A stretch of DNA of 64,000 nucleotides, from assembly GCA_053919585.1 (NCBI GenBank), contig CM132802.1; one strand, 5' to 3'. The number at the start of each line of letters is the position of its first letter. Positions within the stretch are counted from its first letter, which is position 1. A program made the position numbers and the translations under genes. Positions 4,608-17,958 of this stretch are shown here, one piece after another. The notes under the pieces were generated by a model that had not been told where the DNA came from, did no database searches, and saw only the letters and a program-made list of their open reading frames with translations. This DNA comes from Euprymna scolopes. Lineage: Eukaryota.

Positions 4608-4667
<60 letters not shown>

Positions 4668-5251: not shown

Positions 5252-5503
5252 CACTGCGTGTAAAAAAATTAACGACATAACAATTTTTTACGAGTTTCAG
5301 AAACTTTACAGTAGTTTCGTGACAAAAGCTTTGGAAAAATTGGCAATGCTGAGCTACGCGTACTGTGAAATTTTCGTACTGTTCCGCGCAGTGTAAACAA
5401 CTTGCAATCGTAATTGCTTAATCCACGGTATTTGAGCTGTGTCAATTTATTAACAAGCCAGTTGGCTTCGTCAATAACATGGGTCGCAAAGGTGGGTTGA
5501 GTA
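5252..5503 (+). mobile_element. 5' end of a Tc1-family DNA transposon (TRT/DD37E-like): terminus and first codons of the transposase
   Basis: TA followed by CACTGCGTG terminus at 5252. ATG at 5479 gives MGRKGGLS, which continues as SSEK..ITEQVAKDKTVLEISKMIG at 12909 once the 5504-12908 insert is removed. Confidence 0.7.
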
Positions 5504-5531
5504 TCTAGAAGTGTAAGCCATGTTTAGTTTA

Positions 5532-5659
5532 AGAACAGTTTCAGATGGTTCGTTGTTCTAAACAAGTTTTGAGAGGTGACTGGTTTGCAGTAGACAGAAC
5601 AGTTTCCGATTGTTCGTTGTTACACACAAGTCCTGAGAGGTGACTTGTTTGCAGTAGAC
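5532..5659. repeat. Tandem duplication, 2 x ~64 bp
   Basis: agaacagtttc(a/c)gat(g/t)gttcgttgtt...gagaggtgact(g/t)gtttgcagtagac occurs twice head to tail. Confidence 0.9.
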
Positions 5660-5761
5660 AGTTCCACAGAGCAAAATATTCTTAGCGTGTCGAGACGGAA
5701 AAAAAAAGCATGTGAAATTGCTACAGAAAAGGTTTAATATTTATGGAGCAATTGTGGTTTC

Positions 5762-5828
5762 TGATTGGTTGGTAGCAGAACGTGAATTAATTCGATTCGT
5801 CAGTACCTAGCAGCACCGTTTATAAATA
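5762..5828 (+). promoter_or_regulatory. Candidate Pol II promoter (inverted CCAAT box plus TATA box)
   Basis: TGATTGG at ~5762 and TATAAATA at 5821-5828. The expected start site (~5851) coincides with the first copy of the repeat boundary motif. Confidence 0.4.
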
Positions 5829-5851
5829 GAATCGTCCGACTGTGTGGAATA

Positions 5852-6230
5852 ATACCCTCATCACTTCGCCTGATAAGTAAGGTCTCCTAGCGGCTTCGGC
5901 TGAAGGGAGACAGGGTAGTACAAGTCAAGGATTCGTCACTTGACACTCAGCCCAACAGGTGAGGGGACGGGAAATGGCACAACACCTGTTGGACTGATTT
6001 ACGCCGCCTGAATAATACCTAGCAGGTCCACCCTCCCAGGCCTTGCCACCGGGCTTTCCGGTGCGGCAAGTTTATTGGCTGCTGCCTGAGACGCCCTGAC
6101 CGGGGAATGCAGACGGAATTACTCAGCCAATTTTTAAAATTGCAGGAGTGACCCTTTTTAGGGGAGCCTGCGTGGTTCCCACTTTCCGGCCTTGTGCCAG
6201 ATAATGCTGATGTGGGCAGTATTTAAATAT
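5852..6230 (+). repeat. Structured ~360-380 bp unit, copy 1 (candidate SINE-like element)
   Basis: GC-rich unit repeated three times with serial hairpins GTCTCC/GGAGAC (cUUCGg loop), GTCAAG/CTTGAC, CCAACAGGTG/CACCTGTTGG and CTTGCCACCGG/CCGGTGCGGCAAG. Confidence 0.9.
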
Positions 6231-6577
6231 ATACCCCATTACTTCGTCTGATGGGGAAGGTCTCCTAGCGGCTTCGACTGCAGGGAGACAGGGTAGTACA
6301 CGTCAAGGATTCGTCACTTGACACTCAACCTAACAGGTGAGGGGACGGGAACCGGCCCAGCACCTGTTGGACTGAGGTACGCCGCCTGGCTAATACCTAG
6401 GAAATCCACCCTCCTAGGCCTTGCCACCGGGCTTTCCGGTGGGGCAAGTTTATTGTTTGCTGCCTGAGGCGCCTCGACCGGGGAATGCCGACGGGGCACC
6501 TCTTTTAAGGAAGACTGCGGGTTCCCACTTTCCGTCCTTGTGCCACATATTGCTGATGTGGGTAGCAATTAAATATA
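6231..6577 (+). repeat. Structured unit, copy 2 (about 30 bp internal deletion)
   Basis: Aligns by eye to copies 1 and 3; begins ATACCCCATTACTTCGTCTGATGGGG. Confidence 0.9.
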
Positions 6578-6966
6578 TATCCCATTACTCTGTCTGATGG
6601 GGAAGGTCTCCTAGCGGCTTGTGCTGCAGGGAGACAGGGTAGTGCACGTCAAGTATTCGTCACTTGACACTCAGCCCAACAGGTGAGGAGCCGGGAACCG
6701 GCCCAGCACCTGTTGCACTGAGGTACGCCGCCTGGGTAATACCTAGGAGGTCCACCCTCCTAGGCCTTACCACCGGGCTTTCGGGTGCCTTGCAAGTTTA
6801 TTGCTTGCTGCCTGAGGCGCCCCGACCGGGGAATACCGACGAGGTTGCCCAGGCATTTTTTTAAATTGCAGGAGTGCACCTTCGTTGGGGGAGCCTGCAG
6901 GGTCCCAATTTCCGGCCTTGTGCCACATATTGCTGATGTGGACAGCAATTAAATATATACCCCATT
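6578..6966 (+). repeat. Structured unit, copy 3
   Basis: Aligns by eye to copies 1 and 2; ends AAATATATACCCCATT directly before the Tx1 body. Confidence 0.9.
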
Positions 6967-7140
6967 ACCCCGCAGTATTTTGACTTGTGCGGCGCGTTAT
7001 TTTGTAAGCGATTTTTCTCCTTTCTGTCCTTTTCCTTTTACTTTTATCAACGCCGGTTTTTTTTTTCTACGCGACGCTTTTTTCCTGCTTTTCTTCTTTT
7101 TTTTTACTTTTCGCTTAACCGTTTTTTAAACGGTTCGGCT

Positions 7141-8712
7141 ATGGCCGTTTCTGCGAGCCAGACGCCCATTATTATCGATACGATGGTGTCGGAAAACGTC
7201 ACACCTTCTATGCCTAACATCTGTTCTAAACCCCCCAAAATAGACATCAATGTCAAAGACTTCGTTGAAAAGGCAAAACAATGCCTGGAGCTCGTCATCG
7301 ATACAGGTTTGATTGTCAACTTACCAAGGTTGGAAGAAATCCGAAAAAAGTGTCTTACACTATTTGTAGTGGACCGAAAAACAAAAAAGGTACTAACAGC
7401 AAGTACAGACATCGTCATCAACCTTTTGGCTTCAGCAGGATTTAGACCCTTACGAATTGTAAAGTGTAAGGGTTATAATAAATGTAGTGTGCTTCTCAAT
7501 TCACCAGCAGAATGCATAACCATTTCACAAAAAGAAATAATTACACCACAATATATTTTAAGAACTAAATATATGGGGAAACGTCAGACTCCATTGTTCA
7601 TGTTCCACACCACATCGAAGGAGAACATCTCGGCACCTTCTTCCTACAATTCGGCGAAATGGCATCGGTACCAGTAGACGAGTTCTAGTGTATCATCCTT
7701 CGTCATCCTCCTTGATAAGGAAAATTTTGTAAACCTTTCTTACTTCCTTGAGGTAGGAAAAGAAAAAAACTTCACATAATAGTTGCTGGTTGAAGACCAA
7801 CTTGTTGGAATTGCAGCGAGATTAGGCACCTTACGTCTTAGTGCCCCATGAAGAAACCTCAATCAAACCCAAAAAGACTCACCGGACAACACTTGGGAAG
7901 CACAACTTCTACAAGCGTTCTCAAGCCTCCCACCGAAGAAACAACCAACAACCCAGACGAAATCCTCAGAGGAGAACCCTGCCAGATCACCCCTGGGAAA
8001 ACACCCCGGACGCCTGAGCCTCGATCAGATGAAAGAACACACCATGCTAATAAACGAGCCTAGAAAGGAAAATACATCGAAATTGTTAACTTAAAAAAGA
8101 AACTGGACACTCAACGGCAATCACCATAATCCCCATGTAAACCCCCTTCTCCGAAAACAAGCCTCAAGCTTATAATCAACCGTATCACTAAGTCTTCTAC
8201 AAAGTCCAAAATTCCCTCCCCTTACAGAATGCCTCCAGTCACAAACCCCGTCCCTACCAAATTCCCAAATTGATACCCCTAAGCCCCCTTAAAAACATAA
8301 ATCCTCCTCTCCTGTTCCAGCCACCTCTGAGTCCCCTCACAATACTCATCCTGCATCCCCTACTAAGATCACTGCCGACACACATACTGATACGGACATA
8401 GACAAAAAAACAGCAAACAAGAAAAATACCCTCTACCTCCCTGGAAAAAGACATATATATCCTTAACTCAGCAGCTATTCATAACAACAAAAACTTTAAA
8501 GGTACCGACCTCACCAAACTAATTGAGTTTAAGGAGGTAGGGGGAAGCTAATAGGAATCCCCACCAATTTCTCCAAGGCTAAAAGAATACTTACAGTCAT
8601 TCGAAAACGCGAAGAGGCTACGGATTTGATGCAAATGCTGGAAGAGGCAAATATGACCTTCAATATTTTCCCTCCCCTAGCTGTTTTTAAAGACACATAC
8701 ATCAAAAACTAA
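7141..8712 (+). pseudogene. LINE ORF1 (gag-like, with zinc knuckle), disrupted
   Basis: Open frame from MAVSASQTP. CX2CX4HX4C knuckle (PTCWNCSEIRHLTS*CP) at ~7797-7850, then a Pro/Lys/Thr-rich region with stops and frameshifts. Confidence 0.7.
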
Positions 8713-8916
8713 AAAAAAGGTTGTGTTGGGAGGGTCCCGGTAAAAATGCACCACTCACTGTATAGAATAGCAAAACTGACCTATTCTTTGCATGTCGGCA
8801 GTATCTCTCGTGATGGGCTCATCGGTACTGCGATGGGTACCTATTCCCTGACGGGAGCTGTCGGCACGCTCATGACCGCGATGTTCGTTTCTGATTCTCA
8901 ACCCTAAGGCACAATC

Positions 8917-11900
8917 ATGTATCTCAAGCTTGCTAGTGTGAATGTCCGAGGGCTAAGGGCCGACTTGCGAAAGTGGCGATTGAGGTGTTTCCTGGCTAGT
9001 TAAAAGGTCCCTAGATGCGTCGTGTGACCCGTGCTACATGGATCCCGAGAGACGACTACGTGTTTTGGATGTTACCATAAAGGCAGGGCATTTCGTCTTA
9101 TTGGGGTCCATGCGCCCAATAGCCACGTTTAGCTGGCTGCCTTTTATCGACGAATCGAGCAGTTCATGGATACTTTTCGAACGGTTATCTTAGCGGGAGA
9201 CTGGAACGCGGTCCTGGATCCCAATTTAGATCGATCTTGGTTACCTTCTAGGGGAACTAACAGAAATCGGGATGCTGTTTTATTTCGTGAATTTGTGGAT
9301 AAATTTGACCTTATCGACACATTCCGAAATGAAAAGCCCCGTGACTTAGTGTGGACTTGGATAGTTAGACGCAGCTCCGGTCCAGTACAGCTCTCGATCT
9401 ATATCTACCGGTTCTTAGGAGAGTCGGTGTAGGAGTATTGAATTGCCCAAGTTTCCACAATATAGTTTACTCGGATCACAGACTTGTTCGTGTACGGATA
9501 AACTTAGATAGATATAAGCCTTGATTAGCCGGTGACTGGAAGCTCAACACGTCGTTATTCGATGTGAAGGGCTTCAGTGAAGGGCTATTACTAACCCTTC
9601 AGCGGGGATTGACGGGGGCAATTATTGGGAATAAGTGGTAGGTAAAAATTAAGGAAGCAATTAGGTCCTTTTCTGCCAACTTTAGCTAAAGACTCAACCT
9701 AGATTCTAGGGCAGCTAAAGCGACACTAGAGTCTAGATTAGATCGGGCGGTAGAGAAAAGGGATAGTGCTAGCGTTAATTTAATTAAGGCTCATATTGTC
9801 TCCCTTACTGAAAAGGAGCACCAAGATTTTAGTGATTAGGGCTAGGTTAAAAAGAATGCTCCAGGAAGCAACAAACATGGCCGCTGAACTGCGTGCAGAG
9901 GAGCTTCGGCAAGCGGCTGATAAGCACATCGCTCGTATCACATTGCTGGACGGGCGTGCCGTGACCACAGACCAGGGTGTGCTGGAGGCGTTTAGTTCTC
10001 ATTTCCAGGAGCTTTTTTTCATGGAACCCAGTCTGTCATTAGAACAGTTCGACACCTACTTGGCTGACTTTTCTCGTCTTTCGACGACCGAATCGGTTAG
10101 GTGCGAAGGTGGCATAACGGAGGATGAAATCATTGAAGCCTTAAAGCAGGTTGGCCTTAATAAGTCACAGGGGATCGATGGTCTTCCCTACGAAGTGTAT
10201 TTGAGGTTGTCGCACATCTTTGCCCCTTTGCTGACGGTTTTTTTTAACTGATGGTTTAGGAACGTCTCGATCATCAAGTACTTTTTCATGGGTGTGATAA
10301 AGCTTGTTCGTAAAACCAACGATGGTGGGGATGGGTTAGGTAATTTCAGGCCCTTAACGATGCTTAATTCAGTTAAAGATTTTGGCTAAGATTATCGCTA
10401 ATCGTCTGCAGATTGTCCTGGCTCGTCTTACTAACCCCGAGCAAACGTGCACCGTGAAGGGCAGGATAATCCAGGATAATTTGCACACGATACGCCTGAT
10501 GATAGGAAAAGGCGACACTAAGACCGCGCTCATCAATTTAGATCAGTCCAAAGCCTTCGATAGGGTTGACCATCAGTACTTGAGGGCTGTTTTGTTGGCG
10601 GCCGGTTTTGGCCTGCAATATTGCTCGTGGGTTCATCTTCTCTATGCTAACCCCGCAGTGATGGTAGACGTGAATGGGGAGAGGTCGAGGCCCTTCAGTT
10701 TGTCACGATCAATTCGTCAAGGGTGCCCATTATCACCCATGCTATACGTGCTTGTGATAGAGTAATTTTTGCGTAGGCTAAGGGTGAATCCGGTCCCACG
10801 CGGAATCACTTTGCCAGGTGCGGCTGCCCAGGTAAAGTACTTTGCCTATGCCGACGACGTAACTGTGCTTGTTACGAGCAGTGCTTAGATTAGTGTCGTC
10901 GGTGTAGAAATCAGATTGTATGATACGGTAACAGGCGCAAAAATTAACTGCGACAAGTCTGCGCATCGGTGCCTGGAGGCGTATGCCCCTTCAGGGGCCC
11001 TTTAGTTGAAGTGACGGGCCTTGCAAGATACTCGGCGTCTGGTTTGGTCCTGACCTCCAGCTGGAGAAATATTGGTCGGAGGTTCTGAAAACGGTTAAAT
11101 CCGCAGCTGCGCTGTGGATCAGTAGAAACCTTTTATTAAAGGGGAGAGCGGACGTATGTAATACCCACATCTATCCAATCTTAATTTATTGTCTACCAGT
11201 GTTTCTATCCCCGTCAGATACACTGCTATATTTGTAGAGGGCTCTTTTCAACTTTTATGGCTTGGAAGGCCCCCTATGTTCAGTCGCGATGTCTGCTATC
11301 TACATCCTTCTGAAGGCGGTCTAAGTATGGCAAACGTCGAGATTCGGCTCCACACACTACGGCTCTACTAACTAGATCGAATGTGCACACAAGACAAAGA
11401 AGACGGTGGCCTCCGGATGCAGGACACCAAGAAAGCCTTTCCGGCTTTCAGAGGGCTGCACCAGTCCGAGGGGGAGGCGCACAGGTTTCCCCCAGGTTAT
11501 TGCCCCTTCTACCGCGACTACCGGCGCGCGCTGAAGTTTCTCTTCAGAGTTAAGGAAAGCCTCTTCAACTCTCTGCTATTTGCCCGAAAGGCATTATATC
11601 GGGTGTTATTAAGGGGGTCGGTAAGGGATGTTATTGGTAAGGGGTCCCCGTTTGATGAAGGGGCAGCTTCGCTCAATCTGGCCTTGGGGTCCTTGGTCGG
11701 GATGCCTCACTAACGACGAGGCATCCTTGACCTGGCTGGAAATTCGAGATGCTCTCTGTGTCGGTAAGAGACTTAACTCAGCTGGCTTGGCGGTTTCACC
11801 TATTTTTAAACGGTGCGGCGATGAGCGCGAGACTTTATGTCACGCCTTCGTCTATTGTCGCATAGTGGTGCCGCTGATTGAGTCTGTTACAGGTCTCATG

Positions 11901-12225
11901 GTCATATCGTCGTTAATCTTGGTTCCTATCAATGTATGTAGCAATTGGGCTCCGACAACGGATAGGCTTAGAAAAGAATTGTGTGTTGACCTTGCTAGCA
12001 GTGATGAGAGGTCTTATCTGGAACACACGCATGGGAGTGGTCTACGGACCTGAGGACTTCGCTCCCCTCGACCTTATACGAATCTTCCGTTATCATTGGA
12101 AGAGTCGTATCAAGGCCGAGAGAGTTCGACTCTCTTGATCAGATTTTGTTGAAATGCGACTGTCAGTTGCGCGTGTGGGTCGGGTGAGAGAAGCAAGTCT
12201 TGACTGGTTCTTGGGTGTTCCTTAG
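8917..12225 (+). pseudogene. LINE ORF2: APE endonuclease, reverse transcriptase and C-terminal zinc finger (Tx1-like), disrupted
   Basis: Motifs MYLKLASVNVRGLR, LAGDWN, YSDH, WKLN, GIDGLPYE, LINLDQSKAFDRVDH, RQGCPLSP, YADD (~10846) and KRCGDERETLCHAFVYC. Confidence 0.92.
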
Positions 12226-12908
12226 GGAAATAATTTTGGGTAGCAGAAACGAACGTCAGCTCTGACTCGTTTTAAGTCCAGGGTAGGTCACGATTTAGGC
12301 AATAGTAGGACCATTTTTAGGCTCTTGTGTTCATAACCTAACGAGTGTGTGATAGAGATCGTTAGGCCATGTTAAGTTTGTCCCGTTTTTTTTGTTTAGC
12401 ACCATCCCCTTCCCCAAATTAGCTGACAGATCGCTTGATTCGCCAGAGATTCGAGTTCCCTTTCGAAGTTTTCGTAAGATGTGTTTAAATAAAGCGTTCG
12501 GACCCGCATCAACTTTTCGACTGGCCAATCAGCGCACCTGCCACAGTTTAGCAACAGTTTAGAGCGGTCTTTTTTTACTAACATTGTAAATACGTCATTT
12601 AATATTTGTATTATAAAATATTTATATCCCAAACCCTCATTTTTTCTTATGGGTTTTAATTAGTTTATAATGGTATGATGTTCTTATTGTGACTGACGAA
12701 GGATTTATACGCTGATGGATGTATAGCATAAATGTGGTATTGTGGTGAAAGTAGAGTGACAGTAGGAACTAGTTAGATTAGTTAGCTTTAGACAGAGAAG
12801 ACTGTCCTCCCCCTCCCCCATGTTTGACTTTGTGCCAAATTTTTCTGGAAATTCTATATTTTTTGAAAAAAAATATATACCCCATTCATCGTCCAAAATA
12901 TTACAACA

Positions 12909-12986
12909 GAGTAGTTCAGAAAAATAATATTACAGAACAGGTAGCAAAAGATAAAACTGTCCTCGAAATATCGAAAATGATAGGAC
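12909..12986 (+). mobile_element. Middle fragment of the Tc1/TRT transposase (HTH region)
   Basis: SSEK..ITEQVAKDKTVLEISKMIG links MGRKGGL (5479) to HQTLKRLF (~13677). Confidence 0.65.
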
Positions 12987-14641: not shown

Positions 14642-16211
14642 NNNNNNNNNNNNNNNNNNNNNNNNNNNNNNNNNNNNNNNNNNNNNNNNNNNNNNNNNNN
14701 NNNNNNNNNNNNNNNNNNNNNNNNNNNNNNNNNNNNNNNNNNNNNNNNNNNNNNNNNNNNNNNNNNNNNNNNNNNNNNTGAGTGTAAAACGGACTATAGA
14801 ACCGATTAATTATAAATAATAGATACTATATATATAGATATATAACACTGATAGGTATCAATAAATAGTAATGTTTAAATCGAGAAATAAAACATCTTAT
14901 ATTTATTATTGTAAAATCTATTGAGTACAAATAAAATCTGTTATATATTTATGTACCTTGATTACGAATTAAATTTATAGCACGTGACATATAGCAAAAA
15001 ATTAAATCTATTTAAAATAATTATTATGTAGTGTCTAAGTTATATAATGTATTTTTTAAATAACATTAGTTATCCGTGTAGAATAAAATTGTGATGTGGC
15101 GCAAATAAACATCTTATCTGAAAAGAAAAAAAAAAGTCTTCCCATTCTCGGCTGTTATTTTTCTGGCTTTAAACCAAACTCAAGAACAATCTCAATACAT
15201 TAATCTTGGCTGAACCTAATACCACCGTTTTCTCACGCCACAGGCAAGGTCCTGATATTTTCCACGTTTTTTTTTTCTGTTTTTTTCTCTTCAATCTCTT
15301 GTCCTTTGGCACCGCGCCATTTACAATTTACCATTATTGTGTTCTTCTTTTTCTTTTATTGCTGTGTTTGACGCAGGAGAGGTCATTTTGGATCTGAATA
15401 TCCCGGAGAAGTTTCAACGTATTCTATCAATTATAGTTTTCAAAGTTTCATCACAAAAAGCTGCCGAAAGACTGACTATAATTTTCTCACCTGCGGACGG
15501 TCGCTGATTTTTTGTTATTTAATATTTTTGTGTCTCTGGAATAGTCCCTATCCTATTATATTCATTTCACGTAGAATTCGTTACTATATTATGTTATGTG
15601 TAAGTATCACATTATATTTATTCGAGACGAATGAAAAGATTATTCTATCATTAATATTAGCATGAAACGCTTTTTTAGTAATTTGACTACGACTAACATA
15701 AATGGCTCTAAAATGTCAATGGTAATTTAATGTAAACACTATTCAATAATTTCTTGAGATCCATATTGTTATTATATAAATCGGGGTATCATAGGTTGTT
15801 TTAGGCTAATATATATTTTAGTAGTAAGCAATTAAGTTACCTTGCTGTTTTGTACTGATGTGGCATTTTTTTTTAATTTAAAAGAATTGCCTTGCATATC
15901 GTTCTTTTAATATGCCATCATGTCGTGTATGCCAAAATGTTTTATGTAAAGTTTAAAGTTTAAATATAATTTGTGTAATTTAAGTATATATTGCCATTAT
16001 AAACGCGTAGTTATATTAATATTAATCCTTGTATTATTATAGAAAACTCTGAGCATATTTGATCACATTCCTTTGGGAAGTGTTCAGAAATTAGAACCAA
16101 ATAAAACGATATCTGATGATAATATGTATTGATAAAATATTTCGTGTTCATTTTTTCATTCGTTCTGATGGCATTGTATTTGAATCCATAACAAAAAGGA
16201 ACTAACATATT

Positions 16212-16430: not shown

Positions 16431-17958
16431 GTTAAAAAGTACCGATACCTTATCTGGATATTAGGGTTTTTTTTTATATTATGTGAAGTATTCCTGATTA
16501 GTGAATTTAATTGTTTCGTAACTTGCAGAAAAATATCCTATAGCTTTATATTTCACTATATATTAGGAAATTGTACAATAAATCACATACAGTTAATATA
16601 GGCTTAACCTCCTAGCCTTTGACCCAGACAATGATATACTGATCTCGAAGAGATGCACTGAACAACGTGCCTGTCGCTCAGGTGCCTCCCACTGTTCATA
16701 AAAAAAGCATCCCTCACATTTTTAACAAAGCAGAGGCATATACCATACCCTTAACTTTAAGTTGTATTTCACCTGAATAAATCTATATAAACGTCGTAGT
16801 ATGCACTCCAATTCATAGCAAGCCTACCTGTGGGGTAAATGTTTTTCATTAAGATAGATAAAAAATAAAGAAATCGGCTAAAAATATACAAACTTAGAAA
16901 GAGTCAGAATCAATATCCTCTCTCCGCTGGTTTTGCTTACGTCTTCTGTAAACAAATTTTAAAAGAAAATCCACATGAATTTACGCGCAGCTGCGGAAAA
17001 TGAAGACAACTTAATCCAGATCATGCATTCCTGAAACATGCCGTTTATGAACTTTGTACAGGAGTCTAATTCAGTGGCATTTAAATCAGTANNNNNNNNN
17101 NNNNNNNNNNNNNNNNNNNNNNNNNNNNNNNNNNNNNNNNNNNNNNNNNNNNNNNNNNNNNNNNNNNNNNNNNNNNNNNNNNNNNNNNNNNNNNNNNNNN
17201 NNNNNNNNNNNNNNNNNNNNNNNNNNNNNNNNNNNNNNNNNNNNNNNNNNNNNNNNNNNNNNNNNNNNNNNNNTGAAGGAGAAGAAAGACAACAACAACA
17301 ACAACAACACTTTCTATTAAACTGACAATTGTTTCCCGAGCCTCGATATGCTCTCAAATTTATATTCCAGTAGCATTTCTTTAAACAGTATTATCTGAAG
17401 ACAATCAGTTGCATAAAGTGCAAAAACTTCTGTCTTGTAAGAAACAAAAAAGAACATCGATGCTGATGCGTTACAACTTACTGGGCACTTGATATAATTG
17501 TTATCAAAATTACACCGCCAGTCGGTCAAATGCTTACAAAATGGCAAACAACTGTCGGCCTTTGTTCCGCACTGACAGATGGCGCCACTAACTCTAGGAA
17601 CTCACATAGACAATACGTGACAGCCTGTCTATCCATTTCGCCATTACAAACATCGTTGTAATTTAAAATGACTTCCGCCGGATAAGATAACTGGGTGAAT
17701 TAATACTGTATCAATGCACAGCGTGTTGTATTGCACGCTTCTTAGTCTATTGTCCACTGGTTTCAATAAAAGAATGTAAATCTTTGTAGACACAGTGTCT
17801 TGTCATATATTGCGTTCCCAGATCGCAGATACGCAGAACTCTAGGCGCAGTTGCTAATGTGTGTGTTTCTTTGCTATTCCCTATAATAATCTTCTCAATT
17901 CCATTTTGTAAGAATTACCTTTGATATAAACGTTTCATATCAAGATTAAAGAATTAAG

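Follow-up and report, generated by a model that had tools for sequence, protein, structure and literature searches.

Anatomy of the composite

The window analysed here is a stretch of 64,000 nucleotides from Euprymna scolopes (assembly GCA_053919585.1, contig CM132802.1). Its positions 5504-12908 (7,405 bp) are occupied by a composite of repeated elements. A short repeat with promoter motifs, termed the host, is interrupted by three tandem non-coding units and by a degenerate long interspersed nuclear element (LINE), and these guests are separated by copies of a short motif of 10-16 bases, termed the pad. A 5-bp duplication (GAGTA) stands on either side of the whole. We read 5504-12908 as a two-layer composite retroelement, in which guests were stacked at the pad of the host repeat, and give this reading a probability of about 0.6. 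The features are as follows:

5499-5503, no strand: left 5-bp target duplication GAGTA, which belongs to the entire composite
5504-5851, plus strand: host leader of type A, with a 64-bp sequence repeated twice in tandem (5532-5661), the CCAAT-like GATTGGTTGG (5763-5772) and TATAAATA (5821-5828)
5852-6230, plus strand: unit 1, which opens with the degenerate pad ATACCCTCATCAC and has a 3' hairpin of the gamma type
6231-6576, plus strand: unit 2, with an internal deletion of 33 bp
6577-6956, plus strand: unit 3, whose 3' hairpin is formed by ATTGCTG (6929-6935), a loop and CAGCAAT (6943-6949)
6957-6968, plus strand: pad separating unit 3 from the LINE, ATACCCCATTAC
6969-12876, plus strand: degenerate LINE of the L1/Tx1 group, with reverse transcriptase (RT), zf-RVT, an endonuclease remnant, an ORF1-like frame and a unit-like 3' module
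12877-12908, plus strand: host 3' end, comprising the pad ATACCCCATT (12877-12886), the barcode CATCGT (12887-12892) and the tail CCAAAATATTACAACA (12893-12908)
12909-12913, no strand: right 5-bp target duplication GAGTA, which belongs to the entire composite

The 10-base core of the pad (ATACCCCATT) was exact at 6231, 6957 and 12877, carried one mismatch at 6577 and was degenerate at 5852 (ATACCCTCAT). The full 18-mer motif was exact at 6231 only and had three mismatches at 6577 (two matches, compared with 0.04 expected by chance). In addition, the 16 bases AAATATATACCCCATT were identical at 6951-6966 and 12871-12886. An earlier note on this DNA had described a motif recurring five times, three tandem units and a 16/16 identical flank bracketing the LINE. 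All of these are present, though the motif copies at 6577 and 5852 are imperfect. The target is not bare genomic DNA: the site lies within a host repeat with promoter motifs (5504-5851 plus 12877-12908), and the composite as a whole has a 5-bp duplication of its own.

The units of the window measure 379, 346 and 380 bp and have a mean column identity of 88% in an alignment of the three. Because of its indels, the unit array of the window was overlooked by Tandem Repeats Finder. The window contains nine runs of N (1626-1829, 14642-14778, 17092-17273 and six more), none of which is within the composite. An (AT)27 run is located at 4610-4664, 840 bp upstream of the composite.

The host repeat, occupied and unoccupied

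For comparison with the window, 30 genomic loci were retrieved with unit 2 as the query (individual loci are given below as L numbers). The 5' end of the type A leader, TCTAGAAGTG, was common to at least eight loci with unrelated upstream flanks. In elements that carry no LINE, the last unit was followed by the same 32 bases as the LINE of the window: the pad, variable bases and CCAAAATATTGCAACA. The type A host has a length of about 390 bp and consists of the leader, the pad ACCCCATTA, a barcode of 3-7 nt and the tail CCAAAATATTRCAACA. In the type B host, the leader is unrelated and about 215 bp long, and the tail is GTCAAAAACATTTTACA. The type B leader includes its own repeat of about 100 bp, present in one to three copies according to the locus (L003, L004, L007, L015), and the variable copy number is reminiscent of enhancer repeats. 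The TATA box (TATAAATA) begins 31 nt ahead of the first pad, and the spacing between TATA box and pad is identical in the leaders of type A and type B. Judging by these motifs, the leader probably acts as a promoter, with the pad as the predicted transcription start.

Unoccupied hosts were abundant, as the earlier note had anticipated. A pattern composed of the leader TATA, 20-70 nt and the A tail gave at least 1,501 exact matches for type A, and the equivalent pattern gave at least 558 for type B, with none in reversed controls. In type A hosts, the 3-7 bases of the barcode, between ACCCCATTA and CCAAAATATT, were hypervariable and heritable, and the bases on either side were almost invariant. 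About 35 kinds of barcode were present in the first 100 type A matches and every kind recurred. Type B hosts had two main barcode forms only. The pairs TACGT/TACAT and CACGT/CACAT look like the result of CpG decay.

The 5-bp duplication is not peculiar to the window: duplications were also found around L008 (GGTAT), L016 and L020 (both TATAT) and L012 (AAGAA). At L008, paralogous sites without the element are represented by RNA-seq reads and contigs that lack exactly 762 bp and share five letters on the two sides. The L008 host resides in another, very abundant repeat (L008:1000-1154 and 1912-2100). Several hosts or composites are harboured by (TA)n microsatellites (L016, L020, L038, L056, L060).

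The host has features of a long terminal repeat (LTR), namely the 5-bp duplication, the promoter motifs and a 3' end in CA, but its 5' end is TC and not TG. No second host copy was found within the 64-kb window, and upstream flanks were never shared among the compared loci. Inverted termini were not found in the host: its 5' end, TCTAGAAGTG, bears no relation to TGTTGCAATA, which is its 3' end in reverse complement. A DNA transposon similar to Tx1D of Xenopus laevis was also considered as the host; this candidate was dropped for its missing inverted termini, in spite of the 5-bp duplication.

In some hosts and at some LINE 3' ends, a long shared non-coding sequence directly follows the last base of the tail. 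These 'long tails' extend over at least 700 bp for type A (L019:2678-3380, L022:2292-3000, L043:2072-2780, L047) and at least 1,400 bp for type B (L006:1900-3375, L010, L014, L035, L052). They start with a pad-like hairpin (CCCCCCATT-TTTTATA-ATGGGGAAGTCC), and the upstream flanks of their copies are mutually unrelated. The open reading frames (ORFs) of the 'long tails' and of the type B host flanks had no match in Pfam.

The unit family

A 30-base core of the unit was present in at least 1,841 exact copies on many contigs, including all the large ones, and class-2 unit starts gave 1,751 matches genome-wide. Array size ranged from one to at least 35 units, mostly 1-5. Units were found behind both unrelated leader types and behind LINE 3' ends; the best genome matches of unit 2 (about 90%) are located behind type B leaders, on another chromosome. 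All observed units lie at pads, apart from a solo unit (L017:1488-1879, minus strand) with unrelated flanks on both sides. Its start is at the pad (ATCCCCCATTAG) and its end in an incomplete pad, with CTCTC as a possible duplication, as would fit an RNA beginning at the pad.

The 3' end of the unit (6914-6935) and the 3' end of the LINE (12826-12847) are identical at 17 of 22 positions. When the unit was compared with GGCCTTGTGCCAAATTTTTCTG, the common LINE form in 29 other LINE copies, the match was not lost but improved to 19/22, and both sequences then continue with AAATATMT and the pad. The earlier proposal of a dispersed, non-autonomous family carrying the 3' module of the LINE, in variable number per locus (0 to at least 35 units), is borne out by this match and by the count of core copies.

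For an alignment of the family, 50 units were taken from 28 arrays. Units of the same array were no more alike than units of different arrays, with identities of 0.957 within and 0.944 between arrays for the middle part, and of 0.916 and 0.913, respectively, for the 3' part. Array-specific sequence was limited to columns 11-21, which cover the pad's 3' half and a few bases beyond it (0.74-0.97 within arrays, 0.42-0.68 between them), as expected if the target variant of an array recurs at each junction and the unit bodies are imported. The units are independent modules.

The predicted fold of the unit had a z-score of -6.6 relative to shuffled controls. Its 3' hairpin covaries over the 50 units (AU 28/UA 18, UA 33/AU 15 and UA 43/CG 7 at three pairs), and compensatory variants of this hairpin define the unit subtypes. 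At the gathering score, Rfam gave no credible family for leader, pad or unit in the whole window. Rfam cmscan at E <= 10 over 5600-7200 returned no relevant family and no hammerhead, hepatitis delta virus (HDV)-like, twister, pistol or hatchet ribozyme, although HDV-like folds of low conservation could escape this search. ARAGORN found no transfer RNA (tRNA), and with Rfam and ARAGORN no tRNA, 5S or 7SL head was found on the unit. Short interspersed nuclear elements (SINEs) have heads that derive from tRNA, 5S or 7SL RNA and contain an internal RNA polymerase III (pol III) promoter; the unit has none.

The LINE

The LINE of the window is about 5.9 kb long and is riddled with stop codons. Its recognizable domains are RVT_1 (10382-10765, E 5e-15) and zf-RVT (11628-12053), both of which were also found in P0001 and P0002. 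An endonuclease remnant at 9166-9432 is a weak match (E 0.055). An ORF1-like frame occupies 6985-7677, and the 3' module shared with the unit lies at about 12815-12876. There were 22 homologues. The nearest solved structure to the RT of LINE relatives was human L1 ORF2p (E 2e-47, compared with 1e-19 for R2). This similarity fits an assignment to the L1/Tx1 group. The AlphaFold model of the RT fragment (predicted local distance difference test score 39) was unusable.

All 30 sampled LINE 3' ends consisted of GGCCTTGTGCCAAATTTTTCTG, an AT-rich stretch, AAATATMT and the pad. The pad was followed by barcode, tail and unrelated DNA in about 22 of these, by a long shared sequence in four, by a unit in two and by a LINE in two. 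The barcodes at LINE 3' ends were the same as those of unoccupied hosts. The LINE 5' start, TTTTGACTTGTGCGG, was always preceded by pad and barcode (in the window, L040 and C42), and in L040 it directly followed the leader. In L029 and L056, the sequence joined at the pad comes from within the LINE (positions 12062 and 11574), which is what 5'-truncated insertion into a fixed target would produce. LINE-to-LINE joins at the pad were observed at L033:2026-2300 and L058:2011-2300, where a second subfamily begins after pad and barcode. The second subfamily has a different 5' untranslated region (UTR), with an ATG-led frame about 200 bp in. One and the same LINE subfamily carries either type A or type B tails.

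An unlikely alternative is that the entire composite is a LINE: leader and units would be a monomeric 5' UTR of the mouse L1 kind, the tail would be the genuine 3' end of the LINE, and elements without ORFs would be internal-deletion derivatives moved in trans. Only one outer duplication surrounds the composite of the window, a unit lies directly ahead of the LINE 5' start at no fewer than 35 loci (the unit end runs into it unbroken), LINE copies with internal deletions are frequent, and the sampled LINE 3' ends (n = 30) run into pad, barcode and tail, save those that meet a unit or a LINE. However, units as a fixed 5' UTR array of the LINE, which the earlier note had named as the case that would speak against its proposal, are not what was found: 26 of the 30 unit loci had no LINE within 1.5 kb, units occur with and without a LINE behind two unrelated leaders, and they also lie 3' of the LINE, at 19 junctions (including those of L026, L051 and L056). 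Further arguments against a single LINE are that unit bodies have neither positional homology nor within-array similarity, that LINEs follow each other in tandem at the pad, that the tails of one LINE subfamily can be of type A or type B, and that mirrored host barcodes, described in the following section, mark junctions made anew.

Junctions and mirrored barcodes

Genome-wide searches with exact patterns yielded the 19 junctions from LINE 3' end to unit and 58 from LINE 3' end to tail. In L022, L051 and L056, the unit has matching copies of pad and barcode to its left and right when CpG decay is allowed for, which points to a true duplication of about 12-16 bp, near the 16 bases given in the earlier note.

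Upstream of the LINE-to-unit junctions and of the class-2 unit starts stand the host pad, the barcode and the C or CC that opens the tail. One or two bases further on, the first 3-5 barcode bases follow as their reverse complement, immediately before the TGATGGG of the unit. The upstream half of the mirror equals barcodes known from unoccupied hosts. Examples of mirrored junctions are:

ATTA-TACA-TAT-TGTA-TGATGGG (locus L056)
ATTA-CAA-GTCCA-TTG-TGATGG
ATTA-AAAA-CACTC-TTTT-GATGG
ATTA-TAG-TTCTC-CTA-TGATGG

Counted by eye, at least three mirrored bases were present in about 22 of the 31 distinct class-2 unit-start junction types and in at least nine of the 19 LINE-to-unit junctions, with a chance expectation of about 2-4%. 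Since barcodes vary from host to host, the local target must be the source of the mirror. An invariant G stands in TGATGGGG at a place where a fresh pad copy would have A, which shows that this stretch belongs to the unit.

These junctions also bear on the possibility that arrays are built in a single retrotransposition event. On reaching the 5' end of one RNA, the RT would switch to the pad close to the 3' end of a second RNA, in the manner of retroviral strand transfer via R, and the concatemer would insert once. The pad does open and close every module, either module order occurs, composites have a single outer 5-bp duplication, and the pad-like hairpin that opens the 'long tails' after the last base of the host resembles end-to-end joining. 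Yet pads from different RNAs should not share array-specific variants at all junctions of an array, and the mirrored bases match the local host barcode, so that target DNA was copied; because of these two observations, a pure template-jump origin was set aside as quite improbable. The similarity of first units and the divergence of last units (see below) likewise suggest that insertion times differed.

Proposed insertion mechanism

In the two-layer reading, the outer layer would be the host of about 390 bp, with enhancer-like repeats in its leader, dispersed at unrelated sites with a 5-bp duplication. The guests, namely the structured non-coding unit of about 380 nt and the LINE of the L1/Tx1 group, would enter the pad by target-primed reverse transcription. 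Both end with a shared 3' module composed of GGCCTTGTGCCA, a hairpin and AAATATMT. Every guest would be followed by a new copy of pad and barcode (the duplication of about 12-16 bp). Given a fresh pad per guest, the site would outlive each hit and guests would stack head to tail, with the newest adjoining the promoter. Transcription from the host TATA box may start at the pad and supply the guest RNAs, as for LINEs that home to U2 genes and use the U2 promoter. Promoter use, nick positions and the identity of the reverse transcriptase are points that we infer. Stacking at a regenerating target is supported, and the stacking model of the earlier note holds in essence; it was incomplete, as it had missed the host frame.

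The unit start TGATGGGG is an inverted but inexact version of the pad. The 3' end of the complementary DNA (cDNA), CCCCATCA, could pair with the complement of the pad, be extended by 3-5 barcode bases and then be joined, which would give the mirrored hairpin. The further step of regarding the inverted pad TGATGGGG as a functional device, in which the cDNA end invades the pad and copies a few bases of the target, 5' joining takes place by snap-back or through a hairpin, and the system renews its own target, is put forward tentatively; we consider it possible but doubtful. With a pad carried on the 3' side as well, such a system would land precisely at the start of transcription of a dispersed promoter cassette and could convert single insertions into satellite-like arrays.

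Several observations weigh against the two-layer reading or against parts of it. In the type B arrays L010, L014 and L015 and in L020, the inner junctions are alike and the last junction is different. This mismatch needs either a 5' junction formed through homology with the RNA's own 5' pad or local conversion after repeated nicking. The earlier claim that each insertion duplicates the target is therefore too simple for several arrays, even though the junction segment behaves as duplicated target.

At L008, a complete host-plus-unit element, poly(A) RNA-seq showed no pile-up of read starts or ends at the pad and no discrete unit RNA. Coverage was present on both strands and was higher on the leader than on the unit. 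These data speak neither for nor against a discrete unit RNA.

The alpha subtype was first in nine of ten mixed arrays, behind both leader types, and also stood directly after LINE 3' ends (L026, L051, L056). First units were 95.5% alike and last units 90.1%. Both patterns are partly biased and suggestive only, because loci were chosen as best matches to one unit and this sampling favoured well-conserved units.

In about 75% of LINE 3' ends, the host tail of 32 nt is followed by unrelated DNA. Upstream of four 5'-truncated LINE copies, the flanks are unrelated as well; these copies retain the host tail and show no clear duplication. LINE sequence is therefore not confined to the site. Our reading is that LINEs inserted repeatedly into different hosts and that the composites then spread or decayed; alternatively, the LINE is less than strictly site-specific. 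Every complete LINE 5' end that was seen follows pad and barcode, unlike the four truncated copies; the LINE may be site-specific, as proposed in the earlier note, though not necessarily strictly so.

Two arrays on C1 (G000:C1:52937267-52945347 and G000:C1:60986396-60999847) contain at least 22 and at least 35 units, respectively, with a period of 383 bp and ATTATACTTCTTGTCTGATGGG at all junctions. They look like tandem amplification at the DNA level on top of insertion, and would receive a satellite annotation. That the whole family is a 380-bp satellite, grown by unequal crossing-over in a solo LTR or DNA transposon as host and hit by the LINE by chance or through AT preference, is highly improbable: these two arrays and the regular 5-bp duplications and U3-like promoter of the host would suit it, but the unit core is dispersed over all large contigs in mostly short arrays, the nearest relatives of units are not in the same array, the host begins with TC, neither inverted termini nor a paired copy in the 64 kb were found for it, its copies have no upstream flanks in common, coding sequence is missing from the 'long tails', and the exact junction positions recur for LINEs and units alike.

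Comparison with known elements

In Tx1D, the target of a LINE lies within internal tandem repeats of about 400 bp. This LINE is Tx1L, whose target site is in Tx1D of X. laevis (PMC1950540, PMC4494074). The Euprymna composite resembles the Tx1L/Tx1D pair in that a LINE, which in the case of Tx1L has a specific endonuclease, is found at one sequence of a much more abundant mobile element, which is also found unoccupied. However, Tx1D belongs to the piggyBac DNA transposons, is non-autonomous and has inverted termini, whereas the Euprymna host has none and shows 5-bp duplications. A further difference from Tx1D is that some copies of the Euprymna host are shortened at the 5' end and that its tail also occurs at LINE 3' ends. 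The repeats of about 380 bp described here are guests, absent from unoccupied hosts, and not parts of the host as in Tx1D, and the site is at a predicted transcription start, unlike that of Tx1D.

Keno elements are Tx1 LINEs that home to U2 small nuclear RNA (snRNA) genes, and crocodilians have SINEU and Tx1-Mar (Kojima 2015, PMC4494074). As in the Keno, SINEU and Tx1-Mar systems, a LINE and short non-autonomous elements share one target and are inserted into each other, and insertion just inside a small transcription unit would lend the guest the promoter of the host. The pad of Euprymna, in contrast, is neither U1 nor U2, nor does any Rfam family match it. As its partner, the LINE has a multi-hairpin RNA of 380 nt without an snRNA, tRNA, 5S or 7SL head, the pad is renewed with each insertion (arrays of at least 35 units), and target bases are mirrored at the 5' junction.

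The 5' UTR of mouse L1 is monomeric and consists of tandem units of a few hundred bases, variable in number, upstream of ORF1. The units described here also form tandem series of a few hundred bases ahead of ORF1 in variable number. Unlike mouse L1 monomers, they mostly occur without a LINE and are found downstream of LINEs too; moreover, the 3' module of the LINE is present in them, and arrays show no homogenisation of their units.

Metazoan retrozymes are tandem structured repeats of about 170-400 nt with hammerhead ribozymes. The units, found in a mollusc, resemble them in being tandem, highly structured and non-coding, with a length of about 380 nt, and presumably depend on LINE machinery for their movement. 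Unlike retrozymes, they gave no ribozyme match in the permissive search reported above (E <= 10), and their junctions have the features of target-primed insertion.

Compared with these systems, the Euprymna family differs in four respects: the target, a pad, lies where transcription of a dispersed promoter cassette is predicted to start, the structured partner of 380 nt has no pol III head, the pad is renewed, so that arrays can reach satellite size, and target bases are mirrored at the 5' junction.

Implications

Target-specific LINEs are known from ribosomal DNA, snRNA genes, microsatellites and a few transposons. The joining of the 5' ends of such insertions, and the origin of arrays from dispersed elements, are poorly understood. 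The family described here offers thousands of natural junctions with site-specific barcodes. As the barcode differs at each site, target-derived and element-derived bases can be separated by eye, and the mirrored barcodes provide direct evidence, at the sequence level, for copying of target DNA at the 5' junction. The family also provides a candidate endonuclease target, about 30 bp in length.

A promoter cassette can become dispersed before it is colonised, and a non-coding partner without a pol III head can attain thousands of copies. Arrays of dozens of units that look like satellites can begin with single insertions. If the device proposed for the inverted pad is true, it would represent a new mode of 5'-end joining and a route of satellite birth for non-LTR elements.

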